64,000 nt of DNA from Auanema rhodensis (GCA_964057225.1 OZ059896.1:6138001-6202000), one strand, 5' to 3'. Positions 52,701-59,388 are shown, counted from the stretch's first letter. Notes: generated by a model from the letters alone, not told the origin. Program-made: numbers and translations.

Positions 52701-52902
52701 TTATTTATTATCAGATATCTCTGCTGCTAAATCTGATCTGGAAGAAAAGATTAAATAATATTTAGTTTTCATCGCAAAAAGCTCACTTAGCGAGAAAGAC
52801 TCCTATGGGGACCGGGGTTCCCCCAGTTCTTGGACTACAGTCTAAGGACCATGAAGTTCCAAAATTTAATATAATATACAATAGTTTAAACCATGAAGCC
52901 AT
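52701..52902 (-). pseudogene. Truncated inverted copy of the gbb-2 5' end (exon 1 52787-52902, intron 52738-52786, partial exon 2 52737-52709); would encode a 50-aa peptide
   Basis: Mirror of 54140-54333. Spliced translation [52 protein letters not shown] and TAA (52709-52701) are read across the junction into the AT-rich linker. Confidence 0.85.
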
Positions 52903-54333
52903 GGCCTGCAACAAAACCTATATACAACAGTACATATATTTAAATTATATCCATAGAAATTTACACAGCAATTGTGTCAATCGGGAAGTGATGATTGTAC
53001 CTTTTCAAATTAATTATTTCTCAAAATAGAGTGAAATTCATTGAATATATGCAGTGGTGAAGTAAGGCAGCGCAGAAACAAAATCGATACGAAGCAGAGC
53101 AAGACACTTTATTGTGCCAGTTGTCCTCGACAGCGAGGCGGAGCTGTTTATCGTTGATTCTTCGGATGAATACGATATAATATTATTCATTAAAATTGAC
53201 ATCTACATTCAACAAACAATCACATTTTAGCATAAGGAATATCCCTAGTTGTGTAAAGATTTGCATGCATTGTTCAGGTTTTAACTTTTAACTATTATTG
53301 TTTAGGCTTAGCCTTTGCAGTATTCTACAAGTTCCACTGAGTTCACAATCTGAACTTTTTTGAAAAACTTTACTGTTTCAACGAGACAAATCGAATGGCT
53401 AATGTTAGTTAAAGTTCTTTTTGTTGAGATTTTTTGGAACTATTTATATTAGGTGTGCTCAAAAGTTTCTGGCCATCCGCACAAACATTTGAATAAAAAT
53501 ATTAAAATTAAAAAAAGCCATAAACCAAATTCAAAAATATATATAATAAGTAGATTTAATATTTTTAATATAAAAGTATTAAGTACCATTTATAGTATGA
53601 AAATAGAAAGATATATTTAAATTATATTATTAACTAACATTAGCCATTCGATTTGTCTCGTTGAAACAGTAAAGTTTTTCAAAAAAGTTCAGATTGTGAA
53701 CTCAGTGGAACTTGTAGAATACTGCAAAGGCTAAGCCTAAACAATAATAGTTAAAAGTTAAAACCTGAACAATGCATGCAAATCTTTACACAACTAGGGA
53801 TATTCCTTATGCTAAAATGTGATTGTTTGTTGAATGTAGATGTCAATTTTAATGAATAATATTATATCGTATTCATCCGAAGAATCAACGATAAACAGCT
53901 CCGCCTCGCTGTCGAGGACAACTGGCACAATAAAGTGTCTTGCTCTGCTTCGTATCGATTTTGTTTCTGCGCTGCCTTACTTCACCACTGCATATATTCA
54001 ATGAATTTCACTCTATTTTGAGAAATAATTAATTTGAAAAGGTACAATCATCACTTCCCGATTGACACAATTGCTGTGTAAATTTCTATGGATATAATTT
54101 AAATATATGTACTGTTGTATATAGGTTTTGTTGCAGGCCATGGCTTCATGGTTTAAACTATTGTATATTATATTAAATTTTGGAACTTCATGGTCCTTAG
54201 ACTGTAGTCCAAGAACTGGGGGAACCCCGGTCCCCATAGGAGTCTTTCTCGCTAAGTGAGCTTTTTGCGATGAAAACTAAATATTATTTAATCTTTTCTT
54301 CCAGATCAGATTTAGCAGCAGAGATATCTGATA
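52709..54333. repeat. Long inverted repeat (palindrome): arms 52709-53412 and 53630-54333 (704 bp each), 217-bp spacer 53413-53629
   Basis: Position p pairs with 107042-p at both arm ends; the mirrored 74-aa ORFs 52805-53029(+) and 54013-54237(-) obey the same sum. I found no mismatch when comparing the arms by eye. Confidence 0.97.
54127..54136 (+). promoter_or_regulatory. Candidate splice acceptor (possibly SL trans-splice site) just upstream of the gbb-2 start codon
   Basis: TTTGTTGCAG|GCCATG: a pyrimidine-rich AG ending 3 nt before the ATG at 54140, the usual arrangement for nematode trans-spliced genes. A mirror copy lies at 52906-52915 on the minus strand. Confidence 0.45.
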
Positions 54334-57300: not shown

Positions 57301-58650
57301 GTTAGCAAAAGTCGAAACTGAAAATCAACTAAGAAGGCGCTATTTACATCAGGTTAAAGTTTTCTCATTCTTTTCATGTGTTCTTCAATTTTTTAGAAAA
57401 GTAGTCAGCTTTGGGATTTATTAGCTCATTTGCGAGAGCTAGGAGATACTCAATTTCTTCAACAAGGTATAACTGAAATATGGTTCCAAGTTTTTTATAT
57501 TTTAAGTTTATATTATGAGATGGTGAAGCTCTTATTTAATAATATGTTGATACAAAAAAAACATAGTATATTATATTATATTATATTATATACTAATACA
57601 GATAAATAAGAGTATATAGTAATAACAATACATGCGAAGATTTTGAACTTCTTTTCCTGAAACGATATAATGGAGCATCATAATTACAATAGTCATAGGA
57701 GCAACAGCAAAATTCGCTTTCTAAAACGTTATCTATCTGATCCGTATGTGCTCTTTGTTTCAGAAATAGTTCCTAAAATATTAATTTAATTATCTAATAC
57801 TTTATGACTGAATGCCTGAATGTCAGGTTTCAGATCATAAAGTGACAGACACTTTTCATGCATTCCTTTGTTGATACATTCACTTTCAAAAGCACAAAAC
57901 CGATCCACATTCTCTTCGAGTATGCCTGATTTGTTAACTGTGTAATATTCGAAATAGCATTTCTAAAAATATGAAATAAAAAATGCTTCACTCATATTGA
58001 GTACAGTAATACTTATATTCATAAAAAAAAGACTTAAACATTTTGAAAACAGTTACAATCATAAAATTACCATATTTGGCGCTTGACATAGTGTGCTATA
58101 TTCGGCATGAATATCTTGAGTATCATAGCATTCCAAAGAGATTGAAATAGGAATAAAAAGGAGGAGTGCAATTATTTGTTTCATTTTTCGGTGGTTTTCA
58201 ATCCTTGTTTTAGAATGGTGCTATATAAGCAGCAGCTGGAATACTGAAACAGAAAGTGATCGACTTCTGGGACAGCATAGGTGAGAGAATGGCACACCTC
58301 CATTGCTTTAATAAGTTTTATATTACATTGACTATCTCATTTTGTTTGCTAAGCAGAGCATAATGAAAACGAATTAATTCATGAGATTAATGCTAACGAC
58401 TTTTTGTTTCAGTAGTGTGGACGATTCTTCAGGATTATCAAATCGTGAGTTGTTTGAAACAGTTAATTTAAATAATGAAAAGTTTTTTTTGGTAATTCTG
58501 TATTAATTCAAACACAATCATTAATTCCCAAACACTATGTTTGTGGTTATCTTATTATTTAACTTTTATAATAACTTTAAAGAATTTTTAGCAACACAAC
58601 AAGAAGGATGGCCTTGGGTTGATCCTGACGAGCCAAGTACTATGCTTTAA
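54140..58650 (+). CDS. gbb-2: GABA-B receptor subunit 2 (class C GPCR), 23 exons, ~836 aa
   Basis: Phase-compatible GT-AG exons: 54140-54255, 54305-54428, 54539-54628, 54676-54774, 54823-54954, 54999-55115, 55160-55290, 55347-55470, 55552-55728, 55776-55908, 55948-56098, 56144-56276, 56327-56443, 56486-56599, 56650-56751, 56798-56935, 56976-57062, 57110-57228, 57274-57352, 57397-57466, 58214-58280, 58413-58444, 58592-58650 (2511 nt). Has a signal peptide and a Venus-flytrap domain ([61 protein letters not shown]). GABA-B 7TM motifs: [65 protein letters not shown]. Followed by a coiled coil and ...[14 protein letters not shown]. The subunit-2 call rests on my recollection of C. elegans GBB-2. 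Confidence 0.92.
57567..57591. repeat. (TATAT)n microsatellite, ~5 units, just past the nested gene's stop codon
   Basis: TATATTATATTATATTATATTATAT read directly. Confidence 0.8.
57593..58184 (-). CDS. Nested antisense gene: three-finger-fold protein (Ly6/uPAR / activin-receptor-ectodomain-like), secreted or GPI-anchored, 146 aa, 3 exons
   Basis: Exons 58184-58071, 57962-57816, 57772-57593, all phase 0; the second intron is 43 nt GC-AG. Translation: [146 protein letters not shown]. Signal peptide, LxCY start, 10 Cys, CCCxxDxCN motif, hydrophobic C-terminal tail. Confidence 0.85.
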
Positions 58651-59388
58651 TTATTGAACAGATCACTGACTATTTGATTAATCTATAGCATTCCTAAAAC
58701 ATTAACAGAAGAAGAAATTTCTTATAAAAATATCTTCTATAACTTGATTCTTCCAAAGTTTTCTTTTACACATTTAAAGAAATAGAGAAGTCCTGGATGT
58801 CCAACTGTTTTCCAAACAAATTGATGAATCATAAGACAAGGGCTCATCCTTGATAATATTCTATACCATTATGTGTGGAATTAAGTTTTTCATATTTCAG
58901 CACTTTGTCTAAAATCTCCTATTGACTCATGATTCAGCGTTCCACTTATAATGCATGACATCCATTATGTATATTTATATTTCCTTAATATTTTTACACA
59001 CACTTGATACTATTTTTTGGCTCTTGTTGTCGTCATTATTTGCCAATGTACGGTTGAAACTAATTTAATTGTCTACTACTTCATAACTGTAGAATAAAGT
59101 TCAATTCATATATGAAAAAGCAATGTTTAATTAGTAGTGTCAAAATTTGTATGGCTTATGCAATAATAAAATTTGTATACGTATAAATGTATTAATAGAC
59201 TCAATATATTATATAAGCGAAATAACAAGAAGATGAAATAATTTAATTGATTTCCATATTTCATGCGGAAATTAATTCCCATAATTGCATCATTGATTCG
59301 TTATCCTATGTAAATATTGCTCTGTATATTTAAAATATTGAACACATCCGTAGATATTAATTCATATTACGATAAATAATATTTATAT

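Follow-up and report, generated by a model that had tools for sequence, protein, structure and literature searches.

An antisense gene nested in a GABA-B2-like receptor gene of Auanema rhodensis encodes a DUF7773 protein with a likely three-finger fold

A window of 64,000 nucleotides (nt) from Auanema rhodensis (OZ059896.1:6138001-6202000; all coordinates below are counted within this window) contains a plus-strand GABA-B2-like receptor gene, gbb-2, and inside one of its introns lies a second gene, encoded on the minus strand. We find that this nested gene is real and protein-coding and that it is the ortholog of Caenorhabditis elegans NP_001122834.1 (UniProt A3FPJ6), a gene that is annotated but uncharacterised. 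It belongs to an already known family, Pfam DUF7773, and is not of a new kind. The explanation we favor, and in which we have good confidence, is that the A. rhodensis ortholog of A3FPJ6 encodes a 146-amino-acid (aa) precursor of what is likely a three-finger surface accessory protein of the glycosylphosphatidylinositol (GPI) type. An earlier note, made from the sequence alone, had proposed the gene and several readings of its product; we report below how these fared.

Gene structure and splicing

The three-exon antisense gene stands at the positions that the earlier note had given. When the three minus-strand exons are joined, the window translates as a single uninterrupted frame of 146 aa with both junctions in phase 0; the translation matches DUF7773, and the removal of intron 1 was observed in RNA. 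The coding span (57593-58184, minus strand) falls wholly within the 747-nt host intron, and its parts are as follows.

58071..58184, minus strand: exon 1; 38 codons; ATG at 58184-58182; signal peptide, LECYD (Cys1) and Cys2; ends ...PNM
57963..58070, minus strand: intron 1; 108 nt; GT..AG; phase 0; RNA joint 57962->58071
57816..57962, minus strand: exon 2; 49 codons; Cys3-Cys6, CY.EYY, N-K-S-G sequon and DRFC; ends ...DIQ
57773..57815, minus strand: intron 2, predicted from comparison with homologs; 43 nt; GC..AG; phase 0
57593..57772, minus strand: exon 3; 59 codons plus TAG (57595-57593); helical linker, Cys7-10, RFRKR, SSKSS and hydrophobic tail

RNA data were Logan contigs from four public runs, all belonging to one study. 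Although the labels of the four runs are a guess, we took the runs to be RNA-derived, since all host introns are missing from their contigs, with GT..AG ends. The 747-nt host intron, placed at 57467-58213 in the earlier note, is spliced out in all four (joint 57466|58214, GT..AG). In run X1, a contig with a depth of 4.7 joins 57962 to 58071, skipping 108 nt that are bounded by CT..AC on the plus strand, which indicates that a GT..AG intron was removed from minus-strand RNA.

Several observations on the RNA weigh against the proposed gene structure. Spliced intron 1 was found in one of the four runs, at low depth and beside an unspliced path of 4.8 versus 4.7 in the same run (X1); the remaining three runs hold the unspliced path alone at this intron. 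The second of the two junctions proposed for checking, 57816/57772, was not found in the RNA contigs of the four runs, one contig reads unspliced from 57437 to 57963, across intron 2, and the donor of that intron is the rare GC rather than GT. If intron 2 were retained, the reading frame would stop after exon 2. Logan contigs discard minority paths, and a missing junction in them is absence of evidence only; contig depths, for their part, cannot show co-expression of the nested gene and its host.

A rival reading is a decaying or non-functional copy. In such a copy intron 2 would be retained and the product would break off at 96 residues (38 + 58), or else RNA from the minus strand would simply be noise, and the exclusively unspliced sequence across 57773-57815, the GC donor, the low depth and the long branch of the window copy in the family tree are all compatible with this. 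We nevertheless hold it to be extremely unlikely. Exon 3 is open for 59 codons, and every residue that defines the family, in the motif S-x-F-CCC-x4-CN and in the tail, is in phase, and the missing junction is not evidence where contigs drop rarer variants. GC-AG introns, moreover, are functional in nematodes.

Comparison with homologs suggests that intron 2 of the protein-coding gene is indeed spliced. The border between exons 2 and 3 reads AAA ATG CAG|gtatttgg ... ttttccag|AGT CTC TTC in the C. elegans ortholog and ATT CAG|gcattc ... ttttag|GAA CTA TTT in the window, with codon position and phase identical. The family aligns free of gaps across this point (...[IVM][QR]-x-[LTF]F...), and exon 1 ends alike in the window and in C. 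elegans (...PNM|gt). Judging from the C. elegans intron position and the family alignment, we infer that the 43-nt intron is removed from the nested transcript.

One other donor was considered. A GT at 57800, the sole in-frame GT alternative, leaves an intron of 28 nt and inserts the residues AFSHK. We rejected it because this five-residue insert is absent from the homologs and because C. elegans has its intron at the position of the GC donor.

The tiny exons and the GC-AG intron illustrate why annotation based on open reading frames (ORFs) or on GT donors only misses genes of this sort.

At the 5' end, the nested ATG lies 29 nt from the host acceptor (58213/58214), so that the 5' untranslated region or promoter must overlap the host exon or else the mRNA must be trans-spliced. 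A candidate acceptor for trans-splicing of the nested mRNA is the hexamer TTTCAG at 58249-58244 (minus strand). At the 3' end, 127 nt separate the nested stop codon from the upstream host exon, and the corresponding distance in C. elegans is ~100 nt. An AT-rich, (TATAA)n-like simple repeat occupies 57552-57600, directly after the nested stop codon.

Family membership and orthology

The nested gene matches DUF7773 far beyond chance. Window exons were scanned singly against Pfam, where the gathering cut-off of PF24982 (DUF7773) is 26 bits: exon 2 by itself reaches 44.9 bits (E 1.6e-11) over profile positions 24-70, and exon 3 reaches 24.0 bits (E 5e-5) over positions 74-103. From these ranges, the two exons are collinear on a single family model.

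With exon 2 as query, phmmer found eight small nematode homologs (39-46% identity) among 1.84 billion representatives, and one further match, to a 1,922-residue protein over 16 residues; the Steinernema member is from this search. The profile search of a public protein collection returned 18 family members, all of them from nematodes and about one per species, including Caenorhabditis spp., Diploscapter, Oesophagostomum, Angiostrongylus, Heligmosomoides, Necator, Dictyocaulus, Nippostrongylus, Ascaris and Enterobius. DUF7773 is a nematode-restricted, single-copy family. The window protein was not returned by this profile search even though its own exons were rows of the query alignment, which means that it is absent from the searched collection at comparable length. 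The description of the gene as hidden was therefore apt, and a missing gene model is added to the A. rhodensis genome.

All of the protein features that had been read from the sequence are present in the translation: an N-terminal hydrophobic leader with the character of a signal peptide, LECY (extended here to LECYD), six spaced Cys followed by CCC-x4-CN (10 Cys in all), the NKS sequon, RFRKR and a hydrophobic end of 12 residues. Overall identity between the window model and the family is 29-40%, and at this distance the alignment retains all ten Cys together with CY.EYY, N-x-S-G, DRFC and S-x-F-CCC-x4-CN, in keeping with the purifying selection on the Cys pattern that had been named as a check. 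Across the family, Cys3-6 occur in 16-17 of the 17 alignment rows and Cys7-10 in all rows whose exon 3 is correct; the loss of conserved features is confined to gene models that are visibly without an exon. The basic stretch RFRKR is not conserved across DUF7773, and the suggestion that it serves as a dibasic release site is not sustained.

The Enterobius DUF7773 model (L002:2812-3147) reads into intron sequence and is without the CCC-x4-CN exon. A weak tblastn match (E ~1) suggests that the true exon 3 of this species is perhaps at L002:4464-4553.

The C-termini of the homologs consist of a stretch rich in S, T and G followed by 12-17 hydrophobic residues. Read by eye, this combination of small residues and a hydrophobic tail is a predicted GPI-attachment signal. 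The precursor would then be made up of a cleavable signal peptide, a ten-Cys domain of ~100 residues, a conserved N-glycosylation sequon and the C-terminal signal. Two features of the window copy count against this account of it: its hydrophobic tail has just 12 residues, after the SSKSS stretch (again by eye), and it forms a long branch in the maximum-likelihood tree of the family. Because of this long branch, the tree gives no placement of the window species.

The earlier note had missed the orthology to the annotated C. elegans gene. A3FPJ6 is a protein of 173 aa encoded on chromosome IV, inside gbb-2; it is named "DUF7773 domain-containing protein" and carries the automatic name "Protein sleepless" in UniRef. 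We regard the two genes as orthologs because two intron positions and phases are identical, the genomic context is common, and there is about one member per species. The proteins share the Pfam family, the 10-Cys pattern, the signal peptide, the LECYD start, the N-x-S-G sequon and the C-terminal hydrophobic tail, while the genes share two phase-0 introns at identical codons and an antisense position in the gbb-2 intron that follows the exon ending ...GDTxFLQQ. They differ in that the window protein is ~35% identical to A3FPJ6 overall (45% in exon 2) and in that the C. elegans gene contains one more intron, encodes a tail ~20 residues longer, spans 4.8 kb rather than 0.6 kb, and uses a GT donor at intron 2, where the window gene has GC. 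Literature searches that covered A3FPJ6, DUF7773 and nesting in gbb-2 found no paper on the gene. A3FPJ6 is a concrete, testable candidate for C. elegans geneticists.

Predicted fold and relation to known receptors

A three-finger fold, as in Ly6, uPAR and the ectodomains of transforming growth factor beta (TGF-beta) receptors, is likely on the basis of structural models. For the whole C. elegans ortholog, AlphaFold2 (AF2) gave a predicted local distance difference test score (pLDDT) of 70, with a core at 84-92; for the mature domain, modeled from a 19-row alignment, the score was 80 (77-80 among five models). The modeled mature domain combines a long beta-hairpin with short helices and ends in a strand. 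When the domain model was used in a VIA search of 48,161 PDB representatives, the top seven were all LU/three-finger domains, with 67-79 of 101 residues aligned. They were the following.

TEX101: Z 5.1
CD177: Z 4.8 and 4.4
GPIHBP1: Z 4.5
LYPD6B: Z 3.9
TbetaRII ectodomain: Z 3.8
Lynx2: Z 3.8

The whole-protein model likewise placed LU domains at the top ranks of the VIA search (Z down to 3.4). A shape search of the ESM-Atlas returned uPAR/Ly6 clusters at TM scores of 0.49-0.54, and the language-model neighbors were all UPAR, Ly6, LYPD6B or QVR (0.87-0.90).

Set against this assignment are the following. No single fold match is significant by the usual standard. The fold was modeled for the C. 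elegans ortholog and not for the window's own protein. The VIA Z values reach 5.1 at most, while unrelated folds begin at Z 3.7. Foldseek searches of the PDB with both ortholog models gave E values of 0.1 or worse and none at or below 1e-3; GPIHBP1, uPAR, BMPRII and ActRIIA/B recur in the weak rows, as does a long neurotoxin, and ribosomal protein LX turns up among them.

Searches of PDB sequences gave no significant match, whether the query was exon 2, exon 3, the Ascaris member or either of two family profiles, and the sole weak matches were to the CCC knot of BMPRII/ActRIIB and to the tail of CD59. Among the Pfam families that had been put forward for checking, Activin_recp (PF01064) matched exon 3 at 17.4 bits (E 0.009, profile positions 55-78/79), below its cut-off of 20.9 bits, and neither UPAR_LY6 (PF00021) nor QVR (PF17064) matched the window exons; the family that did match was DUF7773. 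Activin_recp reaches an E value of 1 or less in 10 of 19 family members, none above the cut-off, and is the commonest weak Pfam match. UPAR_LY6 matches one of the 19 (E 0.05), and QVR occurs solely as a language-model neighbor. Activin_recp, CD59, UPAR_LY6 and ET make up the sub-threshold Pfam matches in the family.

The best structural and language-model neighbors of the family are single-LU Ly6/uPAR proteins. DUF7773 proteins resemble GPI-anchored single-LU proteins (Lynx1/2, LYPD6/6B, CD59, GPIHBP1 and Drosophila Quiver/Sleepless) in size and in the terminal CN motif, and they share with Ly6/uPAR proteins the order of signal peptide, LU domain and C-terminal GPI-type signal. They differ from Ly6/uPAR in having CCC instead of CC, in lacking the loop-1 C-x2-C and in a long helical insert that precedes the last strand. 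By analogy with the single-LU GPI proteins, the nested gene most likely encodes a cell-surface accessory protein. Its predicted three-finger domain, in which a helical insert precedes the CCC-x4-CN knot, would bind a membrane or secreted partner via its finger loops. A 2026 survey counted ~43 LU-domain proteins per nematode genome (PMC13719153), so one more would be unsurprising.

An alternative hypothesis, raised in the earlier note as a decoy for TGF-beta ligands, is that the protein is a GPI-tethered ectodomain of the BMPRII/ActRII type, a kinase-less decoy or co-receptor that sequesters or presents ligands of the DBL-1/DAF-7 type. Like the type II receptor ectodomains (BMPRII, ActRIIA/B), DUF7773 has ten Cys and ends in F-CCC-x4-CN; the 11 residues RFCCCSTDLCN of the Ascaris member recur unchanged in human BMPRII, and the corresponding sequence of ActRIIB is FCCCEGNFCN. 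The prevalence of Activin_recp among the weak Pfam matches (10 of 19 members, best E 0.009), the TbetaRII, BMPRII, ActRII and ALK ectodomains among the weak fold matches, and the UniProt name "Activin_recp domain-containing" of several orthologs all speak for this hypothesis. However, the sequence likeness is confined to a motif of 11-14 residues, and no match passes a curated or significance threshold. The likeness to Activin_recp is limited to the last third of the domain, and ~31 residues with a helix lie between Cys6 and Cys7, an insert absent from receptor ectodomains. The closest structural and language-model neighbors are GPI-anchored Ly6/uPAR proteins and not receptors, and unlike type II receptors, the nested protein has neither transmembrane helix nor kinase. 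We therefore consider a decoy or co-receptor unlikely. As far as the aligned sequences go, likeness to the type II TGF-beta receptors does not reach beyond the CCC-x4-CN knot. The earlier note's description of the scaffold as Ly6/activin-receptor-like is a fair one in view of the ranking of LU domains, the sub-threshold Pfam matches and the CCC-x4-CN motif shared with BMPRII and ActRIIB.

On the preferred reading, a three-finger accessory protein, a Pfam domain of unknown function that is present at about one copy per nematode species would be linked to the three-finger superfamily, with a knot of the BMP type II form.

The host gene and the conservation of the nesting

The host is a class C G-protein-coupled receptor (GPCR; 7tm_3 in Pfam). 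Its transmembrane exon is closest to structures of GABA-B receptor subunit 2 (E 8e-17), ahead of subunit 1. The parts of the host that flank the nested gene are as follows.

57397..57466, plus strand: host exon, end of the coiled coil; from spliced contigs; directly upstream of the host intron
57467..58213, plus strand: host intron; 747 nt; GT..AG; joint in 4/4 runs
58214..58280, plus strand: next host exon; from spliced contigs; starts EWCY

The 747-nt intron separates the GBB-2 coiled coil from the C-terminal tail. The five host introns upstream of it measure 40-47 nt, and the two downstream measure 132 and 147 nt; the statement that the 747-nt intron is the only long one has to be corrected accordingly.

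The nesting is conserved. The DUF7773 gene of C. elegans is found on the strand opposite to gbb-2, flanked by the host exon that ends ...GDTRFLQQ (~L001:14941) and by the last host exon (L001:8466-8428). In Caenorhabditis bovis (L009) and Diploscapter pachys (L005), the gene occupies the same antisense position in the orthologous intron, after the same host exon end. These gene orders and sequences place the origin of the nesting before the split of the window species from Caenorhabditis and Diploscapter. In the existing annotations of C. bovis and Diploscapter, the gbb-2 ortholog stops just short of the nested gene (L009:13507-23493 and L005:10835-18331), and the last gbb-2 exon of Diploscapter has been called as a separate gene of 94 aa (L005:5853-6815). 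We flag these gbb-2 annotations as truncated in both species.

Conservation of the nesting, which had been proposed as a check, thus holds in Caenorhabditis and Diploscapter and fails in Necator. In the chromosome-level Necator assembly, the DUF7773 gene has a retroelement on one side and a DUF7774 gene on the other, and there is no class C GPCR in its vicinity. In four other strongylid loci, no host exon was found within 10 kb of the DUF7773 gene. Motif and tblastn searches found no host coiled-coil or terminal exons in Oesophagostomum, Dictyocaulus, A. costaricensis and Necator, and tblastn and a reduced motif set found no host exon in H. polygyrus. The Enterobius gene, also antisense, is 2.3 kb 3' of the receptor transmembrane exons, on a contig that ends before any nesting could show; motif and tblastn searches there found no host coiled-coil or terminal exons.

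A DUF7774 gene lies downstream of the DUF7773 gene and on the same strand in both Necator (L007:14196-19842) and Dictyocaulus (L004:24715-26678). This DUF7773-DUF7774 neighborhood is conserved in strongylids, in place of the gbb-2 nesting.

The earlier note had also entertained a modulator co-located with a GABA-B receptor. Under that hypothesis, the protein would be a dedicated GABA-B modulator that acts in cis, as Lynx1 does on nicotinic acetylcholine receptors, and the nesting would maintain its co-regulation with GBB-2. In its favor are the antisense nesting in the orthologous intron, which the window species shares with C. elegans, C. bovis and Diploscapter, and the Enterobius gene, adjacent and antisense to the receptor transmembrane exons. 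Against it stand the Necator gene, which has no class C GPCR nearby, and the four strongylid loci, which have no host exon within 10 kb; nested pairs are, in addition, expected to persist without any function, as breakpoints would destroy the host gene. We judge a dedicated GABA-B modulator to be very unlikely. The same low probability attaches, in our estimate, to the related proposal that an ancient nesting, possibly including Enterobius, has been kept by coupling, with antisense transcription tuning the usage of the gbb-2 3' exon or with the protein serving as a GABA-B auxiliary subunit.

Since the nesting is absent in Necator, it is not obligatory. Because one large clade has separated the old nested pair, and because breakpoints within genes come at a cost, we favor inertia over obligatory coupling as the reason for its persistence. 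On present evidence, we read the nesting as a syntenic arrangement of long standing that is not easily broken up, and not as a functional coupling; its distribution across species argues against inferring function from nesting alone. Nothing links the nested protein to GABA-B or TGF-beta signaling, and, as the earlier note itself had cautioned, nesting alone is no proof of such a link.

The host protein itself has a strongly conserved C-terminus, W-[VI]-D-P-D-E-P-S-T-[MK]-L*, which we found in the window species (58592-58651, plus strand), C. elegans (L001:8428-8466), Diploscapter (L005:5856-5888) and C. bovis (L009:6677-6718). The last three residues of this GABA-B2-like protein resemble a class I PDZ-binding motif.

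A large inverted repeat spans 52805-54237, just upstream of the receptor gene. It contains identical ORFs of 74 aa and 54 aa on opposite strands, paired as 52805-53029 (plus) with 54013-54237 (minus) and as 53038-53202 (minus) with 53840-54004 (plus).

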